DNA of 64,000 bases from Monocercomonoides exilis PA203 (lineage: Eukaryota; Protista; Preaxostyla): positions 434,001 to 498,000 of the forward strand of contig LSRY02000046.1 of the NCBI GenBank assembly GCA_001643675.2. The letters are read 5' to 3'. The translations under genes were made by a program, and so were the position numbers. The notes below the pieces were generated by a model. It had not been told where the DNA came from. It ran no database searches and saw nothing but the letters and a program-made list of their open reading frames with translations. Below are positions 32,395-61,800 of the stretch, piece after piece. Each line of letters opens with the position of its first letter. The first letter of the stretch is position 1.

Positions 32395-33592
32395 TGTTAT
32401 TTGATTTGAATAGAGAAAGAAATAGACCACAAAAAATTCTTTTTTTTCTGATTTGAAGTAACTCAATTGATCAACTAAAAACTGTGAAAATCTCTACTGT
32501 TATACTCGATAATTTTTTGTTAACGCATGGAGCAGAACTATTTTGTTAAATTTTTTTTATTTAAAATTAAATAGAAGAAAGAAATTTTATGGTACTACAT
32601 TATTAATCAAAAATGAGGCTTTATTAAGAAATATATTTATGATCTTCAAAAATTTTTTGTTAAACAGAATAACATATAACAATGAAATCAATTTTTACTT
32701 AAAAATTTTATTTTCACGGTATATATATGAATAATATTAGAAAGAATAAATGTCAAAAATACTCTCAAAAAATAAGCAACCATGAAATGAAAAATTATTT
32801 TATAAAGCGCAGCAATATTTCAATATTGATTACATATCAAAATAAACGTAGTTATTCAAAGGACTGATGTTGAAATAAAGAAAATTAAAAAGAAGGCAAA
32901 TTCTTTCCAATAAACGAGTAAACAGTTTTTAATTTCATTGTTTCGAATGAAACTGCAAAAAACAAATTTTTTACCTCATGCATGTTTCTTTTGATGCTTT
33001 TCAAAACGATGAAAATGACTAAATAATTAAAAAATAATTTGTTATGTGATACTGAAGATCAACTATTGTGTTTTTGTGTCAGAATACAGACAACAAAAAA
33101 ATTAAACAACCAAAAAAGAGAATGACAAATAATTGCAACAAGACAGAAAAAATAATAAAAGTTTTTATGTGTATAATCAATAAGACTGACTTTTTTTCAA
33201 AAGAATTAGTAAAACTCAAAAAACCATCGAAAAACTCGAAATTTGTGGGTTATTGCAAAATAACTTGATTATATCAAAATTGGCATATTCACAAATAAAG
33301 GGGCAGATTTTATCTTACAAAGTATTTTTATTATTTTTTTGTGTTAAAACTCAAAAATAAACATTGCAAAAATAGATTGGTTTAGGTTTTAGGGTTAGCG
33401 TTTCAGATCTTGGGTTTAGGGTTATGTTCCCGCTCTTCTATTTAGGGTTAGCACTCAAATAAACTTGATCTTTTTTGGATTTTTAGGGTTAAAGTTAAGC
33501 CAGGTTTAAGTTGAGTCAAAATGAAATGAAAGAACTTAAACGTTGTGTTATTGTCAATAGCAATTGTTTTTATCAACCTCTTTTTATCAAGT

Positions 33593-33846
33593 GGGTTATA
33601 ATTTTTGAAAAGTCGCAACTGTTTAATATCTGGGTTAAATAAAAATATTCGTAATTAGATCATTTTTTTTCAATTTATTCATCAAACTATTTTAATATGC
33701 AAATATAAAAATTCAAACCTATTTGATGAAAGAACATTTTCATGGCAGAGAAGCTTGATGAATTTCTTGCAAAAAATGATCTAATTATGAATATTTTTAT
33801 TTAACCCAGATATTAAACAGTTGCGACTTTTCAAAAATTATAACCC
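33593..33846. mobile_element. 254-bp MITE (GGGTTATAA-type end)
   Basis: ~75-bp near-perfect TIRs; 4-bp TSD AAGT at 33589-33592 and 33847-33850. Confidence 0.92.
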
Positions 33847-33986
33847 AAGTACTAAAACAAAAAAGTCAAAGATAAAACGTTTTGATTCATTCACGATGAA
33901 TTAAATCAAAAGTGGGACAAGGGGATCACAAAAAAATTACCAAATAATGTATTCTTTCGATCTATTTTTTCTATCTTATTCTGAAA

Positions 33987-36015
33987 ATGAGTCAATCAAA
34001 TTTTTTGGAAATTTTAACTCACGTTGAAGAAAGAAATGTTCTTCCGAAAATTACTCACCAAAAAGAGGAAGAAAAGAAACTGTCATTGATCGAAAACGCA
34101 TTGTTCAAATTCACTAACAAAGATTTGGGCTTTTTCAGAATGACTGGTTTCACAAAGAGTGAGTTTGACCTTCTTGTTCGTCTGGTTCAACCTGAGATAT
34201 ACCCTCATCCGGGTAAACGCAGAGTTATTGAAAAATTGGACGATCAGTTATTCTTGTTGATAAATTTTTTTCCTTTTGGATCGCCAACAGTTTCTCATCT
34301 CATCAAATCACCTTTTCTTAAAACGCAAGATGCAACTCTCAGATTTATACATTCGATCTTGCAATCCGTCAAAGTTTCTTTATCTGATGTGTTTCTCATG
34401 TTTGGACCTTACAGAATTCGTGGAATGAAGGAGGTGGCACTTGTTTTGGACTGTACAGTTTTGCCGGAAAACAAAACAGGAAAAGAATTTAATTGTGGAA
34501 GCGATTGTTTCAGTGGAAAGTACAAAATTTATTGTGTAAAAGTTGAAGTGGGAGTGAATCCAAAAACAGGAACTGCAAGTACAGTCAGCAAGGTTCATGG
34601 TGGAGCAGTTCACGACTATGTCGTGTTTCGTGAGCATTACTCTCAGTTCGCAGCACATTTGGAAGGAGGAAAAATCACGGCAGATTCGGCTTATATTGGT
34701 GCTACAATTGAATTAGGAACAATAATTACCAAACCTGTTTGGACACCAGAGCTTGCAGCACATAGAGTTATCGTCAAACGCTTTTTTGGTCGTTTGAAAA
34801 CATTAATTACAATATTTCGTCGACCTTGGCCCTTAAAAATTTCTTCAATTGCTGAATACTTTTACGTTGCGAGCTGTTTTACAAATAATCACATACTGCA
34901 AAACCTATTATCGGAGGCAGATTTCGAGGCTCATCAACTTTTCCTCTCTGATCTAATTACAAAAGTTGAGCAAAAAAGACAGAAAAAAGAATTGGCAAAT
35001 GAAAAATATAGAGCCAGATTACTTAATCGATTGAACCCAAGTTCAACTCCAACTTCAAGTGTAACATCTTTACATGCACTTGAAGATAGTTTGAATTTTC
35101 ATATTTTAGCCATATTGACTTTATTTATATTAACAATTAAGTTTTTATTTTTTTAACGTACCATATTAATATTTTTATTCAGCTGATGCAACAAATGAAC
35201 ATCAAACACAGATCAAAGAGAAAAAAGGCAAAAGCAGCGGAGATCAGAAAGTTGTTTTAGCAATGAATGAAGATACTCGAATTTCATCGATTTCTGAAAG
35301 AGATGAAGGTTTTGTTTCCAATGATAATGAATGTTCTTTTAAATGGCTGCTTCCTAATCAATGGAAGTCTGCCAAGCAACTTTTTTCTTCATATAATTCT
35401 TCTTTTTAAACTGCAGCATCAGCTAATTCTTCTTCTGTTCTATTCCCACCTATACAAAACCTTTATTCTTCTTCAAATGAAACCTCATCTTCATCAACAA
35501 CTCAACCAGCTTCATCTGCATCTCCACAACCTCCAACAACAATTCTTATTTCGGATCAAACAACACCTTCTCATTCATCTGAGTTGCAATCATCACAAGA
35601 AACATTTATGAATGAAGGAGTAATTTCCACTAATACCTCTCATTTAACTTCTTCTCCGACTTCAATTTTTTCTCAACCATCAACGTCAAGTTCAATTGAA
35701 ACTCATCCAAGTTTTCATTCGTCTCAACCAACATTGGGAAAACAAAAACCTTCAAGTTTATTATCACAACCACGATCTCTCAATCTGGAACAATTAATGC
35801 CTTCAAAGAAAATTCACTGTCATCATTCCTCCATCCATCCTCCTTCTTCCACTCAGTTTATTCAAACAGAACACAACCAGAGTCCTGATAACGATTGTTT
35901 GTGTATTGCAAAAGCACCAGCAAAATCCTGCAAAAATCAAAAAGTGCCCAGTTCTAAACAATACCAACACAAGCGAACTGTTCTCGAGTATCTTTTAAAT
36001 GTTAACAGTTCTTAA
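33987..36015 (+). mobile_element. PIF/Harbinger/ISL2EU-type (DDE_Tnp_4) transposase, probably inactive
   Basis: FFRMTGFTKSEF (HTH region), LVLDCT (D1), FSGKYK, HGGAVHD, TADSAYIG (D2), HRVIVKRFFGRLK (E replaced by K). Probable intron ~35079-35181, then a Ser-rich tail with a stop. Element ends not found. Confidence 0.85.
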
Positions 36016-36699
36016 ATAATTGTCCTTAATATATTTTTCATCGGAATTAGTATCTTTTCATGAATATTTTTATTAATTGCGTTTGTTTTTTCTCCAAAAG
36101 TTTTCCCATCTCCTTTTTGAATATTTTTCATCAATTATTTAACATAATAAACAACTAACAATTATTTTAAGAAACGATTTTTGTTAGAAAAAATCACTTT
36201 AAAAAATAGAACTTTATTGCACGTTTGGGACCAAAAATGATACGAAAAAAAACGTTATTAGTGATATTCAACGCAAAAGTTTCTTTATAAGTAAAAAACA
36301 TTGCTGTGAATCTCTGTTTCGCAGATACTTTCATTAAAAAAGCAAATTCACTTTGAACTTCCGATGTAGGTTATATTTTCTTCATTGATAAGTCGAAAAA
36401 ATGATAATGTTAAAAAATCGCAAGATCTGAAAAAAGTTGAGCATAATGATCATGAATAAACATTCAAAATTCAATAACACAAAACATATCTTCATGCTGC
36501 ATATATTTGAAACGTTATTTATTAGATATGGAAAAAAAAATATATGATCAACAAACATCATTTTCAAAAATCTGCGATACGGCCCGTCATGATAAAACCA
36601 CAACCGTTTTGAATTTATCACGACGAAACAGTGAGATCTAAATTGATTTAACGTTCACAATACGTTATTATATGGCCATATCGTTTTGGTTCTTAAGAT

Positions 36700-36797
36700 G
36701 GGCTTTGGTTCGAGTAGCGCAAGCGGTAGCTTCCTCGACCATTGATATTCCGTTGGTTAAAGGTCGGGTGTTTGACTCCTGACAAAGCTCTTTTTTT
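36700..36797 (+). ncRNA. Candidate Pol III small RNA, vault/Y-RNA-like or tRNA-derived
   Basis: GC-rich island. Terminal stem GGGCTTTG/CAAAGCTC; box A TAGCGCAAGCGG; box B-like GTTTGACTCC; T7 terminator; TATA-like sequence near -30; no valid cloverleaf. Confidence 0.65.
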
Positions 36798-37279
36798 CTG
36801 TGTTTTTCATTATTTTTTTCATTGAAATTTTTTTGCCCCTTTCTCTGTGAATATACATCAATATTTTTCTAATATTTCAAATATTTCACATTTCATCTGA
36901 TACGAATATTGTCACTTTTTCGAATTTGAATTATTTTTCTTCGAAAATTAAATGTTAATCCCGAATTTGAATTATTTATTTTAGAAATAGAATTATTTTT
37001 GGTGTATAAAATAAATAGAAAAACGAATAATCGATTTCAGATAACTCATCAAATCACTGGGCAATGTCAAAATCGAGTTATTTTCCGAAGAAAATCAAAT
37101 AATTGAAAGTCAAGGATTGCATTATTCACCAAAAAATCATTGATAACAATTCAAATACACAAATAAATCTGAAATAAAACAGAACCTCAATTACAGTCAA
37201 GGAAACTAAAGAAAATAATCTGATTTCTTGATCTTTGATAGCACAGATAACAGACAAATATTGGATTGCTGGTCCATCG

Positions 37280-37746: not shown

Positions 37747-40700
37747 TTACAATGAGTACCCAACCATGTCTTGTGTCACATCATCACTTTCCATCTGGAT
37801 CTTCTTTCTCTCATCGTCCAGAAGAGGCTCTCTGCTCATGCGACCTTTAAAGCTTGATGCCTTCCACTTCTTTTTGCAGCAGCCACAGAACAATTTCCCG
37901 CTGAATATAAATTCCACCACCGGAATCAGCTTCCCAATGTAATTCAAATACACAAAAGTTCCTCCCAATGCAGTGATCAGACCAACAGCCGACGTCTTAA
38001 ACGACCTCGTCGTCACAACCACCGTCTGTGACAGCTCCACAAGCACATCCACTCCCACACTAAGCGCAAGGCTTAATCCGCTGTTCTTCACTTGAGAGCC
38101 TGGCTTGATTGAAATCCTGCTCGCTTCGTGCCCCATCTGCACAATGTGCTTCCACTTGTTCTCCTCATACTTGCTAACCATCAGCTCAGCAACAACCTGC
38201 GTTTGTTCTCCGCCTTTGAAAATATGCGCTGGATCACCATCAAAATGACTTTCTGCTTGTGACTGGTACGAAGAGTCAATGAAGAAGTACCCTTTCTGCT
38301 GTGTTATTCCGGAATCAACTGAAATGAACCCATCGATTCCATAAAAGAACGCATCTTTCTCTTTCGAATAGAACGACAGAAGTTTTGCTCTTCTTTCAAT
38401 CGTATCAACGCTTATGTTTTCTCCTGAAAGTCGAATTGAACAGTCTGTTGTTGATGCGAATAATTTGTTTGGAGACGGAGACTGACTGCATCTTGGCTCG
38501 ATAGCAACCGGTTCAGTGGGATAAATATCTAAAAAGTTTCATTTTGAAACAACAAGCAAAGCAGATTATAAAACAAGAAATATGAAAACAATTTATTTTT
38601 CAAAGATAAACTTTAATTTTTTTGAAAAAAATTACAACAAACTTAGTGGGTCATATGACGTTTTTCCAATCCCAAGAAGTGAAGAGCATTCTCCTTGTGC
38701 TTCAGCAAGTTTATCTTTCACATCCTTTACGCATTCCCCCGAATAATCTCTCAACCGAATTATGAACTCCATCTTTTTGTTGGTGTATTTATCCAGCGTT
38801 ATATTCTGGACTTTTGAGTCAACATAAATTCGATTCTCGAGCGTGTTGATCAAAAAAAATAACACAATTACTGCTGAAGCTGCACCAACCACAAAGCAAA
38901 TGCCAATTATCGAAACACATCCCCCATAACTCGTTTTCTTAACAGTCTTTATAGCTTTGTGTGTCTTTTCATCCAGAACATCCTTGTAAGTGTTGGAGTA
39001 TTGATCCAGTTTGTACAGTTTGTCTCGTGTTGGCAGGCAAAAGCACACAACAGCTACAATCAAGCCAAGTGTCAGTGACACACCATAAAACAACACTGTG
39101 AACATTGTTTCTTTGTTCGAATTAGGATCATACGATTTTGGCTGCTCTGTGCACTCAAACGGCTTTCTCTGCAACGTGTTGTTGTTTGCAGCTGACCCAA
39201 CAATACAGCTACTATTTGATTCACAATCCGTGCAATTATAATGGTTAATTTCTGGCATGTATGTGCCTTCTTTACAAGGAACACATGAATAAATCGATGA
39301 TCCAGATCCCCATGAATCTGAGCCAATTGGGCATTTTTCGCATTCTGTTTGGTTCAAGCGCGAAGAATATGCTGCATGATCACAAAGATCACATTTATTT
39401 GTTTCATTGTTAAAATATGATCCTGGAGCGCAGCCAGAAAGGTGACTCTTCAATTTTATTCTTGTGAATTTGTTTGTGGCAATCGGAAGTGGAGTCATTC
39501 TGTCGCTAACTGCATAGCCGCCGAGACAATAAAGTGAATCAAGTGCAAAAGCGCAACTACCGTGCACTATAGGGAAATCCATTTCCTCTCTATCCTCGTC
39601 ATATTTGTGTGTGGCAAGTTTGATTTCTCCGTATTCATCGAAAGTGGACATGGATAAGTATGATTTCTTTGCAACGCCAGATTCCTCTCCTCCAACAACA
39701 AATACAATTTCTCCGTCTCCAACAACAACTCCAGAGCTACCAATAGGGAATTTTGGACCCTTTAATTTTATCCATCCTCCATAAGAATCTGAAACCTCGA
39801 GCGGATGCGCAAAACAAGCTTCGACTGGCTTTTCTCTTTCATCTCCACCACAAACAAATAAATGTGGAATTGGCTTTTGATCATCTCCTTTAACTTTTTC
39901 GTTCAAAGCTTTCAACTTTTCCATTTCATTATTCAAATATTGGCTTTTGCTTTTTTTAGGATAAATTAAGTGTTCTCTTGGAATGATGCTTTTCACAAAT
40001 ATTGTTGGTCTCTGAACCGCAATGCGCATTTCCATAACTTTGAGCCATTCTGATGTGGCAAAATTGAATGCCCATATGCCTTTCTGCAGAATTTTGTTCA
40101 TATCGCAACCTCCAGCAATGTATAACACCGATTCATATATTGTGGCACCAGAACGGCACATTTTCGGTGGTTTGAAATCATTTTTCACTTTTATCTTTTG
40201 CCAAGAATGTGAAACGTCATTGTATTCAAAAAGGTCATTGCTCATTGTTGCAAAATCTCCATTGCTATCATAAGTCGCTCCGCCAAATTCAAAAATTCTT
40301 CCATTTAACGCAGCAACTGCAGCTTCAGCAACAAAAGGTACGTCTTCAGAACAATATTGAAAATCAAACGGTTCTATCCATTCCCCATAATAAAGATCAA
40401 ATAATCTGTTAATTGCCATCATTTTCTTTAACTCAGGGTTGTATCCTCCCACGATAGCTATTTCTCCATTCAATTCAGCAAGATGATGTTTTGTCACAGG
40501 AAGTGAAGTATCATAAAATTTGCCAGACAATCCAATTTCAATGTTTCTCTTATTGTTCAGAATAAAAGATAAGTGTTCCGATTTATTGGTCAAAAATGAG
40601 TTGATGGCTTTTTCACTTTTTGAGCCTGTCCATTCTTTTTTTGATGCGCGATGAAGTTTGTTTGTTGCATAATCTCCGTTTTTTCCGCCAAATGCATACA

Positions 40701-41667
40701 AGGTTCCTTCTTCATCCATCGTGCAAGATATTCCCATTAGACCAAATCCAGAATTAAATATGAAACCATATAGCGTGAAATTTTTCACGTTAGGGTTGAT
40801 CCCAGTTGCAGTCAGATTCAAAACAAATAAGATATCCAACGGTTTTGCATTTGTTCCTTCCTTCCCGCAATATATAAATCCGAAACATTCTGTTTCCGAA
40901 GTGTAACTTGTTAATCCAGATCGAAAAATAGCTCCACTAAAAGGATAATCAGTAATTATTTCAATTAACTGGCAATCATCAGGATTTGACAGTTTCATCC
41001 TGTAAACATTTGGATTGTCATCAATATTATTTGTCAGACCTCCAAAAACAAACAAATAATCTTTGAATACGCATGCTCCCCCATCGCGAAGCGGGGGTGG
41101 ATTTTTTGTGGGATCATTTTCGCGCAAGCAATGCCACAAAAATGTCTGTTTGTCCAGTTCCCACAAATCATTCAAAAGTCCATGAATTCCCTGTCCACCA
41201 AAAATATAAACGTGAGACGACGTTTCCGCCGTGCAGGGGGCATATCTCTCGCAAGGTATTCTTCCTGATTGCGGGAAGATTTCCCAAGAGCCTCGTTCAA
41301 ACTCAAATGAAAGCAATTCTTTGCAAAGTCCACAACTGGTTAATCCACCCCAAATATACATAATGCCTTCAACGCAAAATGATACGCACATGTACCGATC
41401 GGGAAGAACATCAAGATTTGTCGTTGGAGCAATATTCCACAAATTCCGGCTCAAATCATTAAAATATGCATCTTTAATGATATTTCCATCAACACCCCTT
41501 CCACCACCGATAAACAATCCTTTTCTTTGTGGGGTATTGATGAAATGGAAGAATGATCCTTCTCGGGGACAAGGTGGAGAGCCAAATTTTGGCACACTTT
41601 CAACTGCTTCCACCAAATCCATATCTTCAGAGAAAACGATTTGGATGTAGTACAAAAATATAAGCAT
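37747..41667 (-). CDS. Kelch-repeat, Cys-rich (TNFR/GCC2-GCC3-like), three-TM surface protein, ~1,270 aa
   Basis: Signal peptide; about 12 kelch GG motifs (YIWGG, YIFGG, FVFGG, YAFGG...); CAPGSY...CEKCPIGS...CVPCKEGTY; three hydrophobic helices. One intron 38529-38642 joins ORF 38632-41667 in frame to ORF 37747-38181. Confidence 0.85.
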
Positions 41668-48594: not shown

Positions 48595-51500
48595 TCATTG
48601 AAATGAAGCATTTGGCTTTTTTTCCTTTTCAATTGCTTCCAATTCTTTTATATTTTCAATGTTTTCCAGTTCGACTGCGTTAATTTCATTGTGAATAATA
48701 TCAATTGCTTCTCTGCTCACATAAAATGAAGGACATGATAATATTTCAGTGTTAGGAGTTGAAACAGTTCTCTGATGAGTAATAATCATCGATGAATCAT
48801 CTGCTTCAATCTCTGAATCAGTTGCAAAACTTTCCAATTTAGAATGAAGAAGTTCAGGCTGCTCGAAAGCGTAACCGTTAGAATCGTTGTTTTTACCATT
48901 CACAAAAAGTGAAGATGAAAATGGCATTTTTGCGCCAGACTCTTCTTCGAAATGAGTCCAATCCAAGTCGATTTCAACATTTGATTCATCAAATTCTTCT
49001 TCGTTGAAATTCTTTTTGTTATCAGCTTTCGATAATGAGATGAGTGGAAATGGCATGTTAATGCCTTCCGAGAAAGATACTTCGTTCGTCATTGTAATCT
49101 TTTCAATGTTTTCCTTAGAAGTCACGAGTGATGTTTTATTATTTTCAGCTTCTTTAAATTCTTCTCCGGAATTTTCTATGTCTTGTTCCTTTCCTTTGCA
49201 ATTTTTGTCTCCCCTTTCAGTGACATCAAAAAGTGCTCCTTCTTCTCTGCTTAACAATGGAGGGAAAGTTGAATAAATGCAATCGTTCGGTTGATACGCA
49301 GGAATAACTTCAGCATATTTCAATAACACCAACTGTAGCTCCTCGTCCACATCAATTTCATCCTCTTTTTTCTCGTTCTTGCTTTCTTTATCCTGTTTGC
49401 TCATGCAGTAATGATTCCTTTCATAAATTTTTTTTGTATTTGCGTTCACTGAATTTGTTTCCATTAAACTTATATTTGCTATTTTATATTGTTTTTCTTT
49501 CTCTGATATTTCTTTCTCTTTATCTGATATCCTCTTTGACATATACCGCGATCCGGTCCATCCGCTTCTAAAAGCTGTCCAAAAGATGCTCATCAATCCT
49601 GCTCCGCTGTGCATCAAAGGAAGAAGCGGTTGCCCAAATGACTGCGAAGGCAAATGCACCTGTAGTAGAGGTAACATCCCTGAAGGCAACTGCAGCTGAT
49701 GTGTATGCGTTTGTTCAGGATGCGACAGAGAGGCAGTCAGTCGCTCGAAAGGAAATGTTGACTTGATCTGATTGAGTGGATAGAAACCTCTGAATGGAAG
49801 TGCAAACACACCATCCATCTTCAATTTAAAAGGAGTCAAGAAGTATTGATTTTGTCCTGCAAAACTTGTTGAAAGACCACACTTCGCTTTTTCATTTTCA
49901 TTTAATTGCAAAAATTCATAATTTCTGTCTTTGCTATTTGAACAATTAACCTCTTCATGAAAATTTTCTTGCTTTCTTGGAAAGAATGAAAGACACTTAT
50001 TTTTGTGCCTTTTCCAGTTGGGAATGATCCTTCCTTTCAGCTCCGCAACAGCATTTATTCCTAAGTCATACATAAGTGGATCGTTTAACGCAATAATGGC
50101 AGATGTATTGTTCATATCAACAAGCACAAGCGAAGAAGAAGAAGAAGAAGAAGTTGATGATGATACAGATGAAGAAAGCACTGAATTGTCAACAATTTCT
50201 GTTAATTCCATTGGTATTGAAGATAACTCAGAAAGTTGCGATTCGTTCGACAATTCTAAACTTTCATTTTGTTTTTCTGTAACCATGTTCTTTTTCAATC
50301 CATCGTTTTTTTCATCCTTAACATCTCCCAGAATAATGCTTGCATCATCCATTTTCCCTCGTATAAATAAGTTTGCATGCACATGATCATGCAACACCAT
50401 CGGAAAGATAAAGAAAAGCAGAAGCTGCAAAATGGAAGGCAGCGCACGAGTTATTTGGATGATGCTGTGCTGGAAAGTGATATCGATGCAAACAGGCGGA
50501 AGAAAGATTGACTGAAGAAGAAACGAAAAATAATCTATTTCTGAGGGAGAAAGCGAAGAGAACGCTGAAGAAGGATCTTGCTGTTCGGTGGAGAAGCGTG
50601 TGAGGTTCGGATATTGTTGAATGTGTGGAATAAGTGAAGTTGAAGTCAAATACAAAGAAGGAGATTGAAATGAGGCGCACTTGCTTGAATCTTTTTGATT
50701 GTTTGAAGAAGGCTCGGATGCTAATTCTTGTGCAGAAGAACTACAAGGGCTTGGATGCGACAGTTTCGAGTAATAAAAAGGATACCTGTGCTTAAGAAGC
50801 TCGGTGAGGAATGAAACATACAAAGATGAAAAAAGAGGATTATTTTGTTTGAGATTTGCAGATGCGGGAAAATGAAAAGAATTTTCCAATTGCACGCAGT
50901 TATTTTTGTCAATATTCGAAGTATTAATCGGTCCAACAAAAGAATCAGTTGAAACATAATCAGAGGAAGCGGAATCAACAGATAAAGGAGATGATGATGG
51001 AAGAATGTCAGATTTCCCGAACGATATTTCTCTATCATCTTTTCTATGATTGCTGCCTGAATATATCCAATCTTCTTCACTTTCTAATATTTCATCTGAA
51101 TATGACTTTTTGGCTTTGTGAGATTCAATTCTGCTTCTTTGGTTTGGATTGTCAAAATCTTCAGCCCTCATGTTAAACACCCCTCTCTCATCTTCTTGAT
51201 AGGCATTTCCTTCCCATTCATTTTCCTTCTCTTCTTCTTCTTCTTCTTTTATTCTTTCTACATTTTCTTCTCTAATTCTTTCCATTTCTTCTCTAATCTT
51301 TCTCTCTTTCTCCGCTTTTTCTCTTTCATTTTCCAAATATCTTCTTCGTAATTCTGCATTCAGCCACGTTTGGAACGGATACTCAAATGAATGCGTTCGA
51401 TGCTTTTCAATTCCTGGCGGGGGTTTTGTGGGCGCATGCACATCAAAGACTATCATCGGATCCGAAAAATACTGCAAAGAAGACAAAGGAAGAGACAAGG

Positions 51501-52806
51501 AACTGAATTTCTCATTTGACTTACAATCGCTTTGAGATTTGCTAGATTTTTTCTCTTTATCAAGTTCCTCTTCACATTCTTTTCTTTTGGGACCCTTAAT
51601 CTCCTTATCAAATCCAAAAGACATTTTTTCTTTTTTCTTTGAAAGAACTTTGCGATCTCCAAGTTCTGACTGCAAAAGAGGTGTTAAAACATCCATTGAA
51701 TCGACAGAGCCTGAAATATGCAGCAGCTTCCAAGGAAGAACAGGAAGAAGCAGATCAGAAGAAGCGAAAGAAAAGGAAGAAGATGACGCTGATGACGATG
51801 AAAGTGTGGTTAAATGAGTCTGAAGAGGACCATTCGAAGAAGTTGGGATATCAGTTGCTTGTGTTTCATTGCATTCTAAATCTCTTTCTCTTTCCCAACT
51901 AACTCCAGCTTCTTCGATACGTTCGTTTTCTTCCTCATCTTTCTCAAGCAAAGAAGAGCAGAATTCATTTACAGCATTATTGTCTTCTTGCAAGCACACC
52001 ACACGGTCCATGCAATCAGCGTAAAGATTTGATATTTGCTGGCCAGAAGGAACACTATTGCGCTCAATGGAAGGAAGTGAAGGCTTATACAGAAACCTCC
52101 CAGGCTCCATCTTAACTTTGATTCCGTTAAGTTGAACAGCAAAGAAAGGCAACTGAGTTAAAAAAAAAGTAGAAGAAAGAAGAAAAAGGAGTTCAAAAAT
52201 AAATTAATGATATAAAAGATTAAAAATGGGTCAAATATCCAAAATAAATATTGAGAATTATTTTATTTCTCAAAATCTTAATTAAAATAAAGCATTCATC
52301 TTAAAAATTCTTAAAATCCGATCGTTTTCATTGCTCATAATTTCAAATCAACATTACAATTTCAAAACATCCAAAATTTTAATTACCAAAAAATAAAAAT
52401 GTGCACATCCATTCACTCAGATTCCAACTCAAACAACCACAAATAATCACAAAAAAGAGCCTTTCACACACACCTCAGTCATATTCTTCGTCCTCTTCAT
52501 AAGGGGCACCTCCTCCTCCGTCGCTATTTTGTTTGCCAAGTTCAGCAGCTGCCTCTTCCAATGCTCTTTTGCAGCAGTCCCAGGCAGCTTGATAGGAGGC
52601 GATTCAGACACAAGGCGATGAATGCGAGTGAGCCAGGAATAAGAAGAAGAAAGTGACAAAGACAAAGAAGGGATGTTGATGTGGATGGCGAAGGAGAACA
52701 GAGGATGATTTGATGGTGCTAATGATGAAGATGATGTTGAGGAAGTAGAAATATCAGAAGAGGAATGAAGCGAAGGAGAAGGTGATGTTGTAAATGATGA
52801 TGATTG

Positions 52807-52896
<90 letters not shown>

Positions 52897-55800
52897 AGAT
52901 GAAGAAGGAGACAATGGTTGAGGCGAAAACTGTGTTTCTGGGCATGTAACTTCTCCCCTTTGTCCTTTTGCTTTGAACAAAGATTCGTTCGCAGATAGCA
53001 GCGGAATCATCATTGGAGATATCTTTTTCTCGCTAAGCAGACGAATCTTTTCTTCATTCACCATCCTCTCAAACATTTCACTTTCGGTCATTCGTCCATT
53101 TTCATTGCTTTTCCCACTTTCATTCAATCTTGTTTTCTCTTTCTCTTTCTCTTTCATTTTGGCTTTCCCATCCTTTCCATCCTTTTTCGCCTTCCTTAGC
53201 TTGTTCAAAATGTCCTTTAGCATTTTCTGAGGAAAAGCCGAAGAAGATTTCTCTATTGCCATCTGTTTGTACACACTCAAAAACGACGAAAGCGTAGCCA
53301 GCATCGAAGTGAGTACTGAATAAAGAGAACGGCAGAGGCTGAATTCAATTGGGGTGGACGAGACGTCGAGACTGATAGACGAAGGAGCAAGTGAAAGCGG
53401 AATCTTTCGGTGTGAACTGGAGAAAGGTGAGGGAGAGGAGCAGAAGGAGGGCGAAGAAGAAGGAGACGGAGATTGAAAAGGAGAAGGAGAAGGAGTTAGT
53501 GAAGGAGAAGGAGTTAGTGATGGATGAAGTGACGGAGAATAAGAAGAAGAAGAAGGAACCATCGGAGAAGCTAAAGGAGAGCTAACAGGTGAAGGTGCTT
53601 GTATGAAGTGTGCAGATGTTTGTTCGTGTGGAGAAGAGAAAGGATGAGAAGGATGAGAAAGAAAGATGGAGGAAGCATTAGAAGAAGAAGAAGATAATGA
53701 AGAAGACGATGATGATGATGAAAGAGGTGATTGAGAACGAACTGCTGGCGAGTGATGTGAGAAAGAAGGCAAAGAAGGTGAATAAGAAAGAGTAAGTGAA
53801 GGAGAAGGCGAACGCACAATCAATGGAGACATTTTGTTTTTTCCATTCATTTCTCCTGTGAGATTAGGAGTTGTCAATGAACTGCGCAGAAAAGCTGGAG
53901 AAGAAGACGAGCAATTCTCAACAGGAATGGAAAAGCTCTTCTTCTCATTCAAAATTCTGTTTGTTATTCTCACAGCATCAGAAGAGGAGAGCTTTGGCTG
54001 TGTGTTGTTTGCAAAGAAGTCAGAAGCGACGTTCATTTGGAATGCTGAGTGCTTCAGCAGCATCTGCCAGCGATGGCGGATGGGCAGATAAACAGCAACA
54101 AACAAGCCGTCGAGAAGAACGCGAGATAAAATGAATGAAGAAGGAGAAGAGGAAGAGGAAGGAGAAGAAGAAGAAGAAGAGTAAAGTGAAGGGGTATTAA
54201 TGAAGTTAGAGAAGGAAGAAAAAGGAGAGGGAGAAGAGGGAGAAGATGGGGAGAAAGCCAACGAATGAGAATTGACAGACAAAGATGCAGAAGAAGATGA
54301 AATAGCAGAAGAATCAGTGGGCAAAGGCTGTGACAACGCTGATAAGCTCAAATGTGGTGTGGAATTCCTTTGAAGAGCTCTTGATGAATTGCTTTCAAGT
54401 GAATATTGGTCCAAAGATGATGGATTAAACTTATAATTAGTAAATTTATCTTTGTTTGAAGAAGAGAAGGAAGAAGAAGAGGAAGAAGAAGAGGAAGAGG
54501 AAAAAGAAGAAGAAGATGGTGATGGAGATAATGCATCGAAAGTTGCAGAAATAGCAGCAGAAATCGAAGTCGGCACGTCTTTGCCTTCAAAATGCACAAT
54601 GCTCAGCGGATGAGGCGTTGCATAGTTTCTGATAAGACCTTCCTTTTCTCTTTTTTCAACTAGCAAATTTTCACCAATAATTCCTCGTTTCTTCTTCTGA
54701 TTTTTCGCATTTTTCTTTTCTTCTCTTTTCCTTTTCGCTTCTTCTTTTCGCTCTCTTTCGGAAGATGAGACAGGCCCTGTGACAACAACTGGGCCGATGT
54801 GAATAACCAAAAGTGGAGCTAAATTTGCTGTTAAACTGGAATTTTGATATAAAGAAGAAGAAGAAGAAGATAATGATGATGAAGATAAAAGAGAAGAAGA
54901 GAAAGCAGAAGAAAAAGAAGAAGATGAAAGACTTCTTCCAAATATGGAGGAAATTGATGAAAGATGCGTTGAATGTCTTTCTTTTGTTTGATTGCTCTCA
55001 AATTGTTCTTTTTCTTTTTCTTTTTCTTCTTTTTTCATTTTCGCCTCCTGTTTTTTCATCTCATCAACTTTTGGATAATTCATAATTGGCATCACAATCA
55101 AAGCATCAGAAAGTTCGATCAAAACGTCCTCTTCCTTCATAAACATTATTCCACGTTGGATTTCATTCAGCAACGAAGGCAGAAAGGCTGATGATATCTC
55201 CATTTTCTTCTTCTTCTTCTTCTTCTTCTCTTCTTCTGTTCTCTTCTTGGAAAATGTCTGATTTTCATTATCATTTTTTTCACACATGTCATTTCTCTCT
55301 TTTTCACTATTCATTTGCTTGTCTTCAATCTGTTTTTTAAGCTTTGAATTTCCTGTCTCTTCCAATCCTCCGTTTTGGTGCTTCATCAAAGAATGAACAG
55401 AAGCTGATGTTTGTTCAGTCATTTCATTTCCATTTTCTTCCACAATTGTATACGAATCAAGCATTTCGCTATCCAAATTCAACGGCGATGGAGTTAATGT
55501 ATCTTCTTTGTTGTTGTTATTATTATTTGCTTTTTCACCCAAAAACTTTATGTCTTTCTGATTTTCAATTTCTGTTTCTCTAACAGTCGCTATTGCTTCG
55601 CTTCTTCCCTTTTCCTCATTCTCCCTTTTCTCAGCTTCTTTCTCTCTGTTATCATTAGCATCATCATCTTTGCTGTCATTTTCCATCTCTTTCTCGACAT
55701 TCAATGAAGAAAGCGAATAATCCAGTGTTTCAGCGACAAGACACGCTGGAAGCAGAAGATGGAATGGCTGAATGAAACACGACAGCTGGCAGCTGATTGA

Positions 55801-58800
55801 AGAATCATACACCAAATACACACGATCTGATGAATTTGAAGAAGATAAAGAGGAAGAAGAAGAAGATAACGACAATGAAGAAGAAGACGATGAATGTCTG
55901 TTCATTTCAGGAGACAGAGAAGGAGAAGCTGATGGAGCAGGAGTCATCAAAAGCCTTGGCGTAGTGGCAATGATTGGCGTAGATGCTGAGGAAGAAAGAG
56001 CAGGTGTAGCTGAAGGAGCAGGTGTGTATGGCCGCAAAGATGCTGAGAAAACCGGCGAATCAATGGAAGAATTCGCATAGCTCTTCTTTCCTCTCTCTCG
56101 GCCTCTTTTCTTGCTGGTTGAATTTTTGCTGTTAAAGTCGCTATCTTCACTCACCTCAGCCAGAACGGCCAAAAGCTTCGTTCTCCTGTGTATTTCGAGT
56201 GTGAGCGAAAGTGCAGGGCGGGAGGCTGGCAAAGGGACAGCAGAGGAAGAGAAGCAAGGAAAAGTCTGCTTCAGCTCTTCTTCGACTTCTTCTCTGTCTT
56301 CTGCATCTTCTGTGTCTTCAGATACATTCAACATGAGTCTCCCTCTTTCTTCTCCATAAGCTGAAAGGGTGGAATGCATTTTTCGATAAATTGACTGACA
56401 ATTCTTGTTGTTTTCTACCTCCACAACGCGAAATCGCTTCATTGCTCGCCTCAGCTCTTCATCGTTTGCATCTGAACTGCCAGACAAAACTTCAACTCCA
56501 TCATCATCAAAACCTTTCTCTCCTTCTTTCAATCTGTTTCCATTCAAAATCATCATCTTCCTCTTCTTTATTTCTCTTCCTTCTTTCCTTTCTTTCTCTC
56601 TTTTCCTCCTCCTCTCACTCACCAAACTCACCACTGCATTCCTCGTCAGCCCAAAACGAGGAATTGGAGTCAAAGGAGTCATCAGATCAAGACGATAAGC
56701 AGGTGATGCAAAGATCCTTTTGAGCTCTTCCTCTGCAAATGGAGATTGAATTGGCTGTGGCTGCTGCAGCTGGCTGACAAGAGGGTTGTTTGAGTTCTTA
56801 TGGAATTTCAGTCTTCTGTTCTGTTCTTTGAAGCTGAGTGAATACAAAGAGGAATAGGAGAAATAAGGAGAAAAGGGGAAAGGAGAGAAAAAGGGAGATC
56901 TAGATCTTCCGCATTCTTTCCTTTTTGAGCTGCAGATATCAAGACTTGAATGAGAAGAAGAGGAGGAAGAGGAGGAAGAGGAAGAAGAAGAGTTGAATGA
57001 AGAAAACGAAGGTTGCATATGAATTTTGCGTGAAATGGGCACTGAAAGGATGCCTTGTTGTTGATGTTGATTGTTATGAGATAAACATGAACTATCTGTT
57101 TGTTCAAGAAGAGAAGAAGAAGAAGATGATGATGATGACGATGATGACGATGATGAACGAAATTGCATTGTTTCATTGCCTTTCTCATTCTCTTCTTTTC
57201 CTTCATTGTTTTCTATGACTGTTGTTGTGGTGGTTGTAACTGTTGTTATTTGTGTGATGCGCTTAACTGCTCCTGTTTCTGATAGCTCTGTTATTGTTTC
57301 AGTCTTCGTGACTTCTTTCTTTTCTTCTTTCTTTTTCTCTTTTTCTTTCTCTTTCCCTTTTTCGTTTTCGTTTTCGTTTTCTCTTCCACTTTTGTTGTTT
57401 TGTATTAATGATTCATTTTTCTTTTCTTTTTCTTTTTCTTTTTCTTCATCCACAAATTTCATCAGCATCCTTCTTCTCTCTTCCAATTCTCGTTTTCTCC
57501 TTTCTCTTCTTCTTTCTTTCCATTTCTTCTCCTTTTTGTGAATTTCCTCGTAATTCGGCTGCTGCAGAGGAAGAGATGTTGGCCAAAGAAAGACGACTCC
57601 ACTTTGGCCAATGAAAAGAGGAGGAGAAGAATTCTTGGCTTCTTTTAAAGATGAAGAAGAGGAATTTGAAGAAGAAGAAGATGATGACGATGAAGAAGTG
57701 ATATTTGAAATCAGCTCGTCCATTTTTGCTTTAGCGCTTCTTATTTCCTTTTCATTCTCCACACTTTCATCAGTTGTTTCTTCATAACAATCAGATGAAT
57801 TTTTGCTTGTAATTTTATTTCCATTCTCGTCAAATTCATCATCCTCTTCTTCCTCTTCTTCCTCTTCCTCTTCTTCTTCATTTCTTTCATCATCTTCTTC
57901 TCCTCTTCCTCTCTTCATCTCTCTCAACATCGCTTTTCTCCTCCTCTTCTCCTCCCTTTCCTCCTCTTTCCTCTGCTTCTGCATCTCCTTCCTTCTTGTC
58001 CGAATAATCGAATTTGTCAAAGTCGGCCTCACAGAAGGCACAAGGCAGGCATTTGGATGCAGCTCATCTTCAGCACTTTCAAAGAGAAAGTCTGCAGAAT
58101 ACACAAAAGACATCAACCTCTCCTTCAGCTCAGCCATCAGCCGTGCATCTGAAGACTCGCTGATTAATTCAGGTGGAATGCCAAGCTTTGCTCGTAGCTG
58201 CTTTATTCGCTCGTTTCGAGGGAGAGAATCTTTGAAAAGCAAATAAGAAGTGGAAGAAGCAGAGGAGGAAGAAGATGATGACGAAGACGATGATGATGAA
58301 GGCTGAAAAGAAAGAGAAGAAGCAGAATTTTCTGAATATTCTATCTGATTTGTATTTAAACTCATGTTATTTGAAGAAGAAGCAGAAGCAGAAGAAGCCA
58401 ATGAAGTTGTAAGAACAGTAACATAACTATCTTCCTCTTCACCCCCACTTCTGTTGTTGTCTTCCATTCTTTCTCCTTCTCTGCTTCTTTCCTTCGGCAG
58501 CTCCACAACATAAGTCGGAAGCACAACACACCCGTCCTTCGCTTTGTTCTTGTTCCACGTGGCAAATGAGCTTTCGCTCTCCCACAGCTCCATATTCATT
58601 TTTTCCCTCTCTTCCTCTTTCTCCTTCTCCTCCAGCAGCACCCTCAGCTCTACTGCGTCCTTGTACCTTCTCTTCATCGCTTCGCATTTCTTTGCAAAGT
58701 CTTCTCTTGTTCTTGCAGAATGCTCTACTTTGACAGACCCCACCACAAAAGACACGCCAACAGCCATCCACTCTTCGCCTGGCTGGAGACGAGGAGATGT

Positions 58801-61800
58801 TGATGGATCAAAAGCAGAAGGAGGAGGGGCACGGTGATGCTGGAAAGAGGAAGAAGAGGAAGACGGAAAAGAAGGGGAAAAGGGTGATGAGGAGGAAGAG
58901 TAGGATGAAGAATCAGAAAGGGAATATGATTGAGATGTGAGAGAGGAAGAAGAAACACTTCCAGATGAATCCTCGTTATAATCATAGAATGACTTGCTAG
59001 TTCTCAATCCATTTGCATTCTCCATAATAAATGGAATATTTCCTCCTTCTTTTGCACTTCTTTCTTTTCTTTTCTTTTCTTTGCCAATTTTCTTTTTATC
59101 TTTCTTCTGTTTTCCCATCAAATCATCCAGTTTATCTACAAAGTCGTCATCATCATCAAGCGCAATCACATCCATTGGATCAATCGATGAGAACAACAAA
59201 TGTGATTTTTCTCCTTCGTTCCCTCCACTTCCCCCATTTTTGAACATTTCTTCTTCTGCTTCGGCTTCTTCTTCTCTGCTTCCTTCTTTTCCTTTCTTTT
59301 CGCTTGCTGCTTTCTTCTTCAAATCCTTTTCACGCATTTTCAGCCATTCTGTCTCCTTCTCTCTTTCTCTTCCTCTCTCTTTCTCTCTCTCCCTCTCTTC
59401 TTCCTCTTCCTCCTTCCCCAGTTTCCCCTCTCTCGCCATCTGTGCATGCCTCAGCTGAATCCATCTTAGTCTTCTGTTTCTGAGTGAAGGAGCGTCTGTG
59501 CTTAGACAGAGAAGTGGAAGTGGATTAAACGCACGCTGCAGAATAAGCCTTGTTCGGGCAGAGGAATGTGGAAGGAGGGGGAAAGGCAAGGAATAAATGG
59601 ATGATGATGGATTCAAAGGATAAGAGGAAGAAAGCGAGGGGGGAAGAGGAGAGAAAGAGGGATGTGATGAAAGAAGATGATTTCGCGACAACGAAGAATA
59701 AAAATCATTTTTTGATGAATTTGAGCGTTTCGATTTTTTCTGGTGGAAAAGGTTGTTTATGCTTGTTGAATAAACAGTCAATGTTGAGTTGATCTGATTG
59801 AACTTTGAAGATTCTGACTGAAAACGAGGATACGATGAAGATGGCAGGCACGATGATTGAAGTAATTGGCATGTTTGTGTGGAAGATTGCCTGTTTATCG
59901 TTAATTCTCCGGTAGAATTAGGCAAATTCCACGTTTCGTCAGTCGTTTGTCTGCTGTTAATGTTCTTATTGGCTTCAATGCCATTCTCTAACTCAACTGC
60001 ATTGCTTCTGCTTTTCTTTTCTTTTTCCTCTTTTTCTTCTTCTTTTGCAATCTGATAAATGCTTTTCTCCATCTCTTCTTCTCTTTTCAGCATTTTTGCT
60101 GGTAACGAATGATTATCTTTTGTGAGGGAAACTGCCAAATGGATGTGCTGCATGTCAAATAGAACAAAAGGAGAGAAAGGAACAGAATCAAACACTTCCA
60201 ATGGAACTGAAATAGTTTGTCGAAAGCTCGCTGATGATGATGATGATAACAAAGAAGAAGAAGAAGAAGAGACTGCTTTTGAGTCTGCTTCATAAAAAGA
60301 CGATTGATGTGAATGATTAGCAACAGTTGCTGAAGACGGAAAAGTCATTGCTGAAAAGTTGAGTGGCTTGCGATGAAGCAAATGAACAGGCTGAACAGCA
60401 GACATGCTTTGAAACGAGGAGCGCTTGCGATGGTCCCAAGAAAGAGACACACGAAGTGCATTGAAAAAAATAGAAGCCGACAGAAAATTGAAAGAAAAAG
60501 TGGAAAATAACGAAGAAACAACAGAGGAAGAAGTAGAGGAAGAAGAAGTCGGCTGCAAAAGAGAACTTTCTGCTTGTTGATCAGACTCATTCTCTGTCTC
60601 TGTTTTGCATTCATTCGAATCTCCACTCTCTTCTCTTCTCTTCTCTTTCACGTCTTTTTCATCATCTGCCCTGTTTTGATGTCCATTTGCTTCATCATTT
60701 TCGCTGCCCTTTTCAATTTTTTGCATTTCATTCGCTTTCTTTCTCTTGTTTCCTGCTGCTTCCAACACATCCACAAGCTTCCCCAGCCACTTCAGCATCG
60801 TTCTGGCGGTGCGCAACGTGAGTGGAATGTTCAACGAGCCAAACAAAACACTCATCTGAATCGAAGTTATGCTGCGGAGTTGTGTGTTGTTGGTGAAGAG
60901 GAACTAAAAATTAGAGTTTTTTTAAAGGAAATGAAAATGAAAGGAAAAGAAAGAAAAGCAAAGAAATAAATAAATAAATGAAAAATGAAAAATGAAAAAT
61001 GAAAAATGAAAATAAAATGTTTATCAAATTATTTATGAAATGAAAAAAAATTAAGTTAAAACTCATAAAGTTTATTCGAAAATCAGCAAATTCTCTTTGA
61101 AAGCAAAACCACTGAAAGTTAAAAAAAAGTCTGTCATACTCTCACTTTCATTGGAAACGAAGGAATAAGTGGAATGCCTCCATCAATTGGCTCAAACAGC
61201 GGGCCGAACTGTGGCCAAAGGGAGTTTCTTCCTTCTTTTTCAGCTTCTTTCTCTTCTTCGTGTGATATTTGTCTGTATCTGAAATGTTTATGTCAATATT
61301 ACATTATTTCATTTTTTTATAAGAAATAAACAAATAAAGATAAATAAATAAATAAATGTCTATCAATATTGTGAATACCTCATCTGAACAAGCGATGCGG
61401 ATATTGAAGAGACAAGCAATTCCTTTCGATGAAATTTCTCAATTTTCCTTTGATTCCATTTTTCGGCAGTTGATATATCAGAAAGCTGATGTTATCGAAC
61501 GGGGAAATTTCATAAAACGGATAAATAATGAAACAAAAGATTTAGAATTGCAGGAAAGTTCAAAGAAAAACAATAAATAATCAAAATGCATAATTCTATT
61601 TGATTTATTTTTTCAAAATATTTTCATTTTGTTAACTTTTTGCACACATTCCAATTTGGATCAGTTGAATAAAGCCAAATATCTTTCATTTCGAAAATTA
61701 CGGCCCATGTTTTCGGAAGTGCAGTTGGAAGTTGTGAAAAACGGTTTGATGCAGGTGACGGCATTCTAACTGATATTTTGAGATTTTTTATCTCCAATCT

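Follow-up and report, generated by a model that had tools for sequence, protein, structure and literature searches.

A decayed transposon copy at the locus

The window, by which we mean the whole 64,000-nucleotide stretch of Monocercomonoides exilis PA203 DNA analysed here, contains a GC-rich block of 91 nt at positions 36700-36790 of the plus strand. It has an 8-bp closing stem (GGGCTTTG/CAAAGCTC), a box-A-like motif (TAGCGCAAGCGG; 36715-36726) and a degraded box B (36770-36780), and is followed directly on its 3' side by a run of seven T residues (T7, 36791-36797, plus strand) that resembles a Pol III terminator and is found in nearly all copies described below. An earlier sequence-only reading had taken this block for a lone unannotated small RNA gene, and its placing of the block, the stem, the box-A-like motif and the T-run was accurate.

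The block is a decayed tRNA-like module within a non-autonomous Merlin element of 3576 bp (33282-36857). The element is flanked by 8-bp TSDs, TCAAAATT at 33274-33281 and TCAATATT at 36858-36865, which match each other at seven of eight positions. Its left 23-bp TIR (33282-33304, plus strand) starts 5'-GG and has three mismatches to the consensus GGCATATTCACAGAGAACGGGGC, and its right 23-bp TIR occupies 36835-36857 on the minus strand. The left arm (33282-33530, plus strand) corresponds to positions 1-247 of a 408-bp MITE backbone (86%) and contains TTAGGG-like repeats, while the right arm (36694-36857, plus strand) corresponds to MITE positions 246-407 and is the unit common to 17 copies in the genome. 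Between the two arms lies a nested PIF/Harbinger-like transposon (33531-36693, plus strand) with the ends AGAACTTAAACG... and ...CGTTTTGGTTCT, flanked by GAA at 33528-33530 and TAA at 36694-36696. This nested element sits 6 nt upstream of the module and contains a 389-aa ORF (33987-35156, plus strand) that matches PF13359 (DDE_Tnp_4, E 5.7e-14), a Harbinger-type DDE nuclease.

Three other copies (L055, L057 and L054) carry this same nested element at the corresponding site. Because the window copy and L055 share this cargo and have different 8-bp TSDs, the composite has moved as a unit by Merlin transposition. We considered cargo capture ("Pack") as the origin of the interior of these elements and rejected it, as the internal pieces are nested transposons with TIRs and short TSDs of their own. 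The TATA-like motif that had been proposed as an upstream promoter element, TATTATAT, does lie about 30 nt upstream of the module (36666-36673), but it is located inside the nested transposon, which ends at 36693, and is missing from insertion-free copies.

Contigs of four sequencing runs from one sample were compared with the region 33000-37200. Those from X1 and X2 cover all of it and confirm the assembled sequence across the module. Contigs from X3 and X4 fall almost only on 33987-35819, which comprises the Harbinger ORF and the next 650 nt, with nothing meaningful over the module; such a distribution would fit transcriptome libraries, and if that is what they are, this Harbinger family is expressed. 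Elsewhere in the window, two uninterrupted minus-strand ORFs of 2802 aa (52447-60855) and 1185 aa (48595-52152) have no Pfam match, and a further minus-strand ORF (38632-41667) encodes a Kelch / ephrin-receptor-like protein.

The island is the right subterminal module of Merlin family A

We searched the M. exilis PA203 genome (82.3 Mb, 101 contigs) and found 17 copies of the module at 82-93% identity. The supposed lone gene is therefore a real sequence but not a unique one, and it forms part of a transposon. The shared unit of about 162 nt (window 36695-36856) extends 66 nt beyond the T-run and stops sharply at a transposon terminus, ...GTTCTCTGTGAATATACC. In nine copies a 250-nt left part starts with the inverted sequence GGCATATTCACAGAGAACGGGGC, and left and right ends pair genome-wide into elements of 0.4 to 5.7 kb. 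The TIRs are 23 bp long and start 5'-GG (GGCATATTCACAGAGAACGGGGC versus GGTATATTCACAGAGAACGGGGC); perfect 8-bp TSDs, differing in sequence, surround 11 copies. Dispersed copies bounded by TSDs were what the sequence-only reading had itself named as grounds for abandoning its proposal, and in spirit that is what the genome contains, except that the TSDs bound a Merlin DNA transposon and not a SINE.

The autonomous copy is 1508 bp long (G000:C10:32742-34245) and encodes an intact 355-aa ORF (L056:125-1189) that matches PF12762 (DDE_Tnp_IS1595, E 1.6e-23), with a weak match to Zn_ribbon_IS1595. Hallmarks of Merlin elements are TIRs starting 5'-GG and TSDs of 8 or 9 bp (PMC8101967), so the termini, TSDs and DDE_Tnp_IS1595 transposase together establish membership in this superfamily, with which family A also shares a single-ORF autonomous element of about 1.5 kb accompanied by non-autonomous derivatives. 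The 8-bp TSDs had first suggested a hAT element, an assignment that was dropped since the autonomous copy encodes an IS1595/Merlin transposase. The 91-nt island is thus the right subterminal module of a Merlin (IS1595-type) cut-and-paste family, here termed family A.

The presence of Merlin in M. exilis is already published: more than 100 copies in at least seven families have been described from Monocercomonoides sp. PA203 (PMC8101967), and we obtained more than 114 Merlin transposase matches in the genome. Unlike what we find in family A, that description mentions no tRNA-like or structured subterminal module. The word "tRNA" occurs zero times in the article, and the family A TIR was not found in the accessible part of its supplements. 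Neither the tRNA-like module nor its use as a target was found in PMC8101967, PMC8767320 or PMC5911963.

The module lies 66 nt inside the right end of family A elements. In the autonomous copy it lies on the transposase strand, about 220 nt 3' of the stop codon, and a poly(A)-signal-like AAATAAA motif is found 5-11 nt upstream of it. M. exilis poly(A) signals have been reported as AAAUAA and AAUAAA, placed 20-30 nt before the cleavage site (PMC8767320); with this spacing, the transposase mRNA probably ends at or in the module. Every non-autonomous derivative of family A has kept the module, and the 408-bp MITE retains 194 nt of the right end and only 38 nt of the autonomous left end.

Several family A loci have features of their own. 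MITE positions 39-214 (L004; 176 nt; window 33340-33520) are absent from the autonomous copy and rich in telomere-like TTAGGG/TTTAGGG repeats. On G000:C30, an inverted segmental duplication at least 2.9 kb long and 99.9% identical holds two MITE copies, L002 (about 604 kb) and L003 (about 610 kb); their TSDs are identical, and we treat them as one insertion event. At L010 (G000:C6, about 321 kb) the MITE left arm has a run of about 50 A residues followed by unrelated sequence, and a left TIR is found 25 kb off, at C6:346285, which may reflect a large insertion or a rearrangement. L107 (G000:C1:771300-774400) is a degenerate relative of family A with many stops, 80% identical in nucleotide sequence over positions 4-1342. 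It lacks a right TIR and breaks off some 10 nt short of where the module would be, and is therefore uninformative on the module.

Module structure and tRNA resemblance

The family A consensus has a perfect box B (GGTTCGACTCC), with T7 directly after the 3' end of the module. Box A (TAGCGCAAGCGG) has one extra base and lies 16 nt from the 5' end in family A rather than 8. The order box A - box B - oligo-T that defines type 2 Pol III genes is thus present in the consensus, with a near-consensus box A, whereas the window copy, for which such an architecture had been proposed, is decayed and its box B degraded. We regard a Pol III-type architecture as plausible for the family.

Decay of the window copy can be traced to six substitutions that are private to it relative to the family consensus, at module positions 10 (C>T), 33 (A>T), 59 (C>T), 70 (G>T), 74 (C>T) and 84 (C>A); five of the six replace G/C by A/T. 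They turn the perfect box B into GTGTTTGACTCC, so that the box B variant noticed in the sequence-only reading (36770-36779) is a decayed form of the consensus. The private substitutions also yield the motifs GGTTCGA, CTGAC and TTTGAC. GGTTCGA and CTGAC had been put forward as Y-RNA motifs, and each needs one of these substitutions: the consensus reads GGCTCGA and CTGCC at the same places. What was observed in the window is therefore real but belongs to a decayed transposon copy.

The same holds for the fold. The closing stem of the proposed panhandle is real, but the fold of the window copy as a whole (-29.5 kcal/mol, z -1.6) is not clearly better than chance, as 12 of 200 shuffled sequences fold equally well. 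For a consensus-like copy the fold reaches -42.0 kcal/mol (z -4.9), which none of 200 shuffles equalled. Family A and its sister family B (see below) both fold as rods; a cloverleaf can be drawn for the module, yet it is 17 kcal/mol worse than the rod. Within family A, substitutions mostly break pairs and there is no covariation above that of shuffles, a pattern that follows from the neutral decay of inserted copies and is silent on master copies. The sense strand folds better than the antisense strand by 10.4 kcal/mol in family A and 4.5 kcal/mol in family B because of G:U pairs. This asymmetry would favour an RNA, or a single-stranded sense strand, as the form in which the module acts.

The 3' third of the module aligns with the T-arms of genuine M. 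exilis tRNAs at 20 of 24 nt, with a local alignment score at the upper edge of the shuffled null, and the remainder has no tRNA resemblance. In common with tRNA genes and the heads of tRNA-derived SINEs, the module has a box B (GGTTCGACTCC), a T-arm-like 3' third, an oligo-T end, an upstream box-A-like motif at workable spacing and an acceptor-like closing stem. Unlike them, it has no cloverleaf match and no hallmarks of retroposition, and it is mobile only within a DNA transposon. From these likenesses we infer that the module is a tRNA-derived, Pol III-type unit with predicted transcription.

No vault, Y or tRNA match for the module

The sequence-only reading had taken the island for a TROVE-binding RNA of vault or Y type. 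A cmscan of the whole window against all Rfam families gave nothing at gathering thresholds, and within 36600-36900 there was no match at E<=10, with Vault, Y_RNA and tRNA among the models; the consensus-like copy and the sister family likewise had no Rfam match at E<=10. The TROVE domain of TEP1 and Ro60 (PF05731) had no match in a six-frame search of the genome, where introns could hide weak exons, and the control was positive in two genomes. The vault repeat of the major vault protein (PF01505) also gave no match, but here the control genomes could give no signal either.

The module resembles vault and Y RNAs in its length of about 90 nt, its closing stem, its internal Pol III promoter elements and its oligo-T/U end. 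It differs from them in having no covariance-model match, in being multi-copy within a transposon, in the absence of the diagnostic motifs from its consensus, and in that no TROVE protein was found in the M. exilis genome. Judged by the grounds on which it was itself to be judged, the vault/Y interpretation of the island fails. A false lead is thereby removed: M. exilis gains no vault or Y RNA.

The companion claim, that the island is not a tRNA, holds. ARAGORN predicted no tRNA genes in the window or in 15 family loci, and the tRNA covariance model (RF00005) had no match at E<=10 to the window copy, the consensus-like copy or the sister family, whereas genuine tRNAs of the same genome score 58-71 bits with this model.

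A sister Merlin family carries the module at the same position

A second Merlin family, family B (L059/L060), has at least 10 copies and a transposase 46% identical to that of family A. It carries a 64-nt version of the module at the same distance from the right end, followed by a T-rich run, and this version also folds as a rod (-29.3 kcal/mol, z -3.5). Families A and B align over the entire right end, with its T-rich tract and TIR, whereas their neighbouring non-coding DNA cannot be aligned. The right subterminal region of family B also has a telomere-like motif, TTAGGGTTAGGG.

A 10-bp closing stem is complete in both families. Comparing helices by hand and by script on a hand-made alignment of these two lineages only, we found that the stem differs at six of its ten pairs, five of them by double compensatory changes, and that an inner CGACC/GGTCG helix is common to both. 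Chance alone would produce a 10-bp stem at fixed positions with a probability of about 1e-4. MAFFT followed by RNAalifold returned no consensus structure for A and B owing to a misplaced gap, and for this reason no covariance model was built.

The module is absent from five other Merlin families of this genome, which implies that Merlin transposition does not need it. Looser pattern searches of the genome for further module-bearing families recovered only A and B.

Transposons insert just upstream of tRNA genes and at the module

In a sample of 67 genuine M. exilis tRNA genes, about 15 have a transposon end 4-12 nt upstream of the mature 5' end. Three families are involved: pogo-like, Harbinger-like and an unclassified family X, whose ORFs have no Pfam match. 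Pogo-like ends (...CCCCGACT) lie 4 nt upstream of Thr-CGT, 6 nt upstream of Thr-TGT, 7 nt upstream of Gln-CTG and 8 nt upstream of Glu-TTC genes. The corresponding distances for Harbinger-like ends (...AAGTTCT) are 4 nt for Arg-ACG, 6 nt for Gln-TTG, 7 nt for Thr-TGT and both 9 and 12 nt for Glu-TTC, and for X (...TATTTGACACGC) they are 8 nt for Arg-ACG and 10 nt for Lys-CTT. The tRNA loci with insertions, or their paralogs, are L034, L085, L089/L090, L097, L037/L038, L044, L083, L096, L100/L101, L030/L031 and L043. Among them, the Gln-CTG paralogs offer a filled site (L089) and an empty one (L090), with the insertion at TA. Many insertion-free tRNA genes (L018-L051, L078-L106) have a T-rich stretch and then a CAAGAA/CAACAA-like motif within the last 12 nt or so before the mature 5' end (for example ttttcaagaa or ttccaacaa); it may be a start-site element, and Merlin modules do not have it.

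The same three families are found at the 5' edge of the module. In family A, the Harbinger-like element lies at -7 (the window copy, L055, L057 and L054), X at 0 (L052) and a pogo-like element with a PF03184 ORF at +7 (L053); L052 has a stack at the module edge, first a Harbinger-like element and then X. In family B, Harbinger-like elements are found in L075 and L073 and a pogo-like element in L072. Module insertions thus lie anywhere between -7 and +7; the spread is broader than at real tRNA genes, and it is shifted. Since the targeting elements have symmetric TIRs, we claim no orientation preference. In L053 (G000:C41:742823-746532) the pogo-like element (TIR AGTCGGGGAGTTAACC..., PF03184 ORF) follows module position 7, and a second copy of its TIR adjoins at C41:744717-744755, which suggests tandem or nested copies.

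Pogo-like ends total 48 in the genome. When their coordinates were compared with a partial tRNA list, four adjoined listed tRNA genes and two adjoined Merlin modules, a coincidence out of reach of random insertion in 82 Mb. The occurrence of the same transposons at tRNA genes and at the module suggests that the cell reads the module as a tRNA-type gene, and the insertions look like Pol III-gene targeting by cut-and-paste transposons.

Pol III-directed integration has so far been documented for retrotransposons of yeast and Dictyostelium, and the Pol III-gene-targeting elements reviewed, Ty3, Tj1, TRE5-A and DGLT-A, are retrotransposons only (PMC5911963). The M. exilis elements resemble these in accumulating on the 5' side of tRNA genes, no more than a few bases away. 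They differ in that at least two of the targeting families are cut-and-paste DNA transposons, as the pogo-like family has TIRs and a PF03184 ORF and the Harbinger-like family has TIRs and a PF13359 ORF.

Discussion

We lean towards the view that the right subterminal module of Merlin family A, present in the window as a decayed copy, is a tRNA-derived unit of Pol III type that is likely to attract TFIIIC and TFIIIB. Ty3 depends on TFIIIC and TFIIIB that have been loaded onto boxes A and B (PMC5911963), and it is by analogy with Ty3 that we infer the loading of Pol III factors on the module. In chromatin, the module would most likely assemble TFIIIC and TFIIIB, and their presence would explain why tRNA-targeting transposons are found at its 5' edge. 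An RNA made from it would fold as a rod-like hairpin. As to what Merlin might gain, we would guess that the module either forms a boundary or roadblock at the transposase gene's 3' end or yields a small structured RNA.

In an account that we consider unlikely, the module serves transposition as a cis-acting DNA element, for example as a subterminal transposase-binding site or a cruciform-forming palindrome, and it gives rise to no functional RNA and attracts no Pol III factors. The subterminal position, the lopsided retention of the right end by the MITE, the alignment of the whole right end between families A and B through the T-rich tract and TIR, and the form of the module as a long imperfect palindrome are all consistent with it. 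Against this, the G:U pairs favour the sense fold by 4.5-10.4 kcal/mol, which a cruciform would not; the stem sequence has been replaced through compensatory changes instead of being kept as a binding site; and five other Merlin families do without such an element. The account also leaves the tRNA-targeting elements at the module's 5' edge unexplained.

Were the module instead a neutral relic, a tRNA gene fragment captured once by an ancestral Merlin element, one would understand why the T-arm portion is tRNA-like and the remainder is not, and why changes within family A look neutral. Its persistence across transposases only 46% identical, amid nearby non-coding DNA that can no longer be aligned, speaks against this, as do the five compensatory pairs that maintain a closing stem with so small a probability by chance and the perfect box B of the family A consensus. 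We therefore judge this explanation improbable.

Hardly any weight can be given to an independent tRNA-derived SINE inserted into a Merlin element. The module has the tRNA-like head and the A and B boxes of such a SINE, and its dispersed copies are many, but all occurrences of the 91-nt unit are at Merlin ends. The unit keeps a fixed distance of 66 nt from the terminus, has neither TSDs nor a tail of its own and recurs at the same position in the sister family, and its T7 run would halt Pol III ahead of any SINE body. A vault or Y RNA bound by TEP1 or Ro60, which the size, closing stem, A/B-box-like motifs and oligo-T run had called to mind, is almost certainly not what the module is, given the Rfam and TROVE searches, the restriction of the Y-like motifs to one decayed copy and the place of the unit in a 17-copy transposon.

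The tRNA-derived, Pol III-type reading can be carried further. The module may be a working tRNA-mimic Pol III unit, shared by two Merlin families and mistaken for a tRNA gene by pogo-like, PIF/Harbinger-like and X elements, so that inserted elements aimed at Pol III genes would ride along when Merlin moves the composite. We hold this fuller version tentatively, and rate its chances at a little below even. If it is true, Pol III-directed targeting by DNA transposons would have no earlier example, going by the review cited above (PMC5911963), and one transposon would serve as both landing pad and vehicle for others.

For Merlin, the comparison of families A and B indicates that this lineage has kept a structured tRNA-like module for long, a feature that the published description of the superfamily (PMC8101967) does not mention. 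For the elements that use it, the module is a natural reporter: those that insert just upstream of tRNA genes also insert here, which points to Pol III-factor-directed integration by cut-and-paste transposons. If confirmed, a 64-91-nt module and its known targeting elements would offer a compact test system for transposases that read Pol III chromatin, and would account in part for the nested, composite make-up of transposons in the M. exilis genome.
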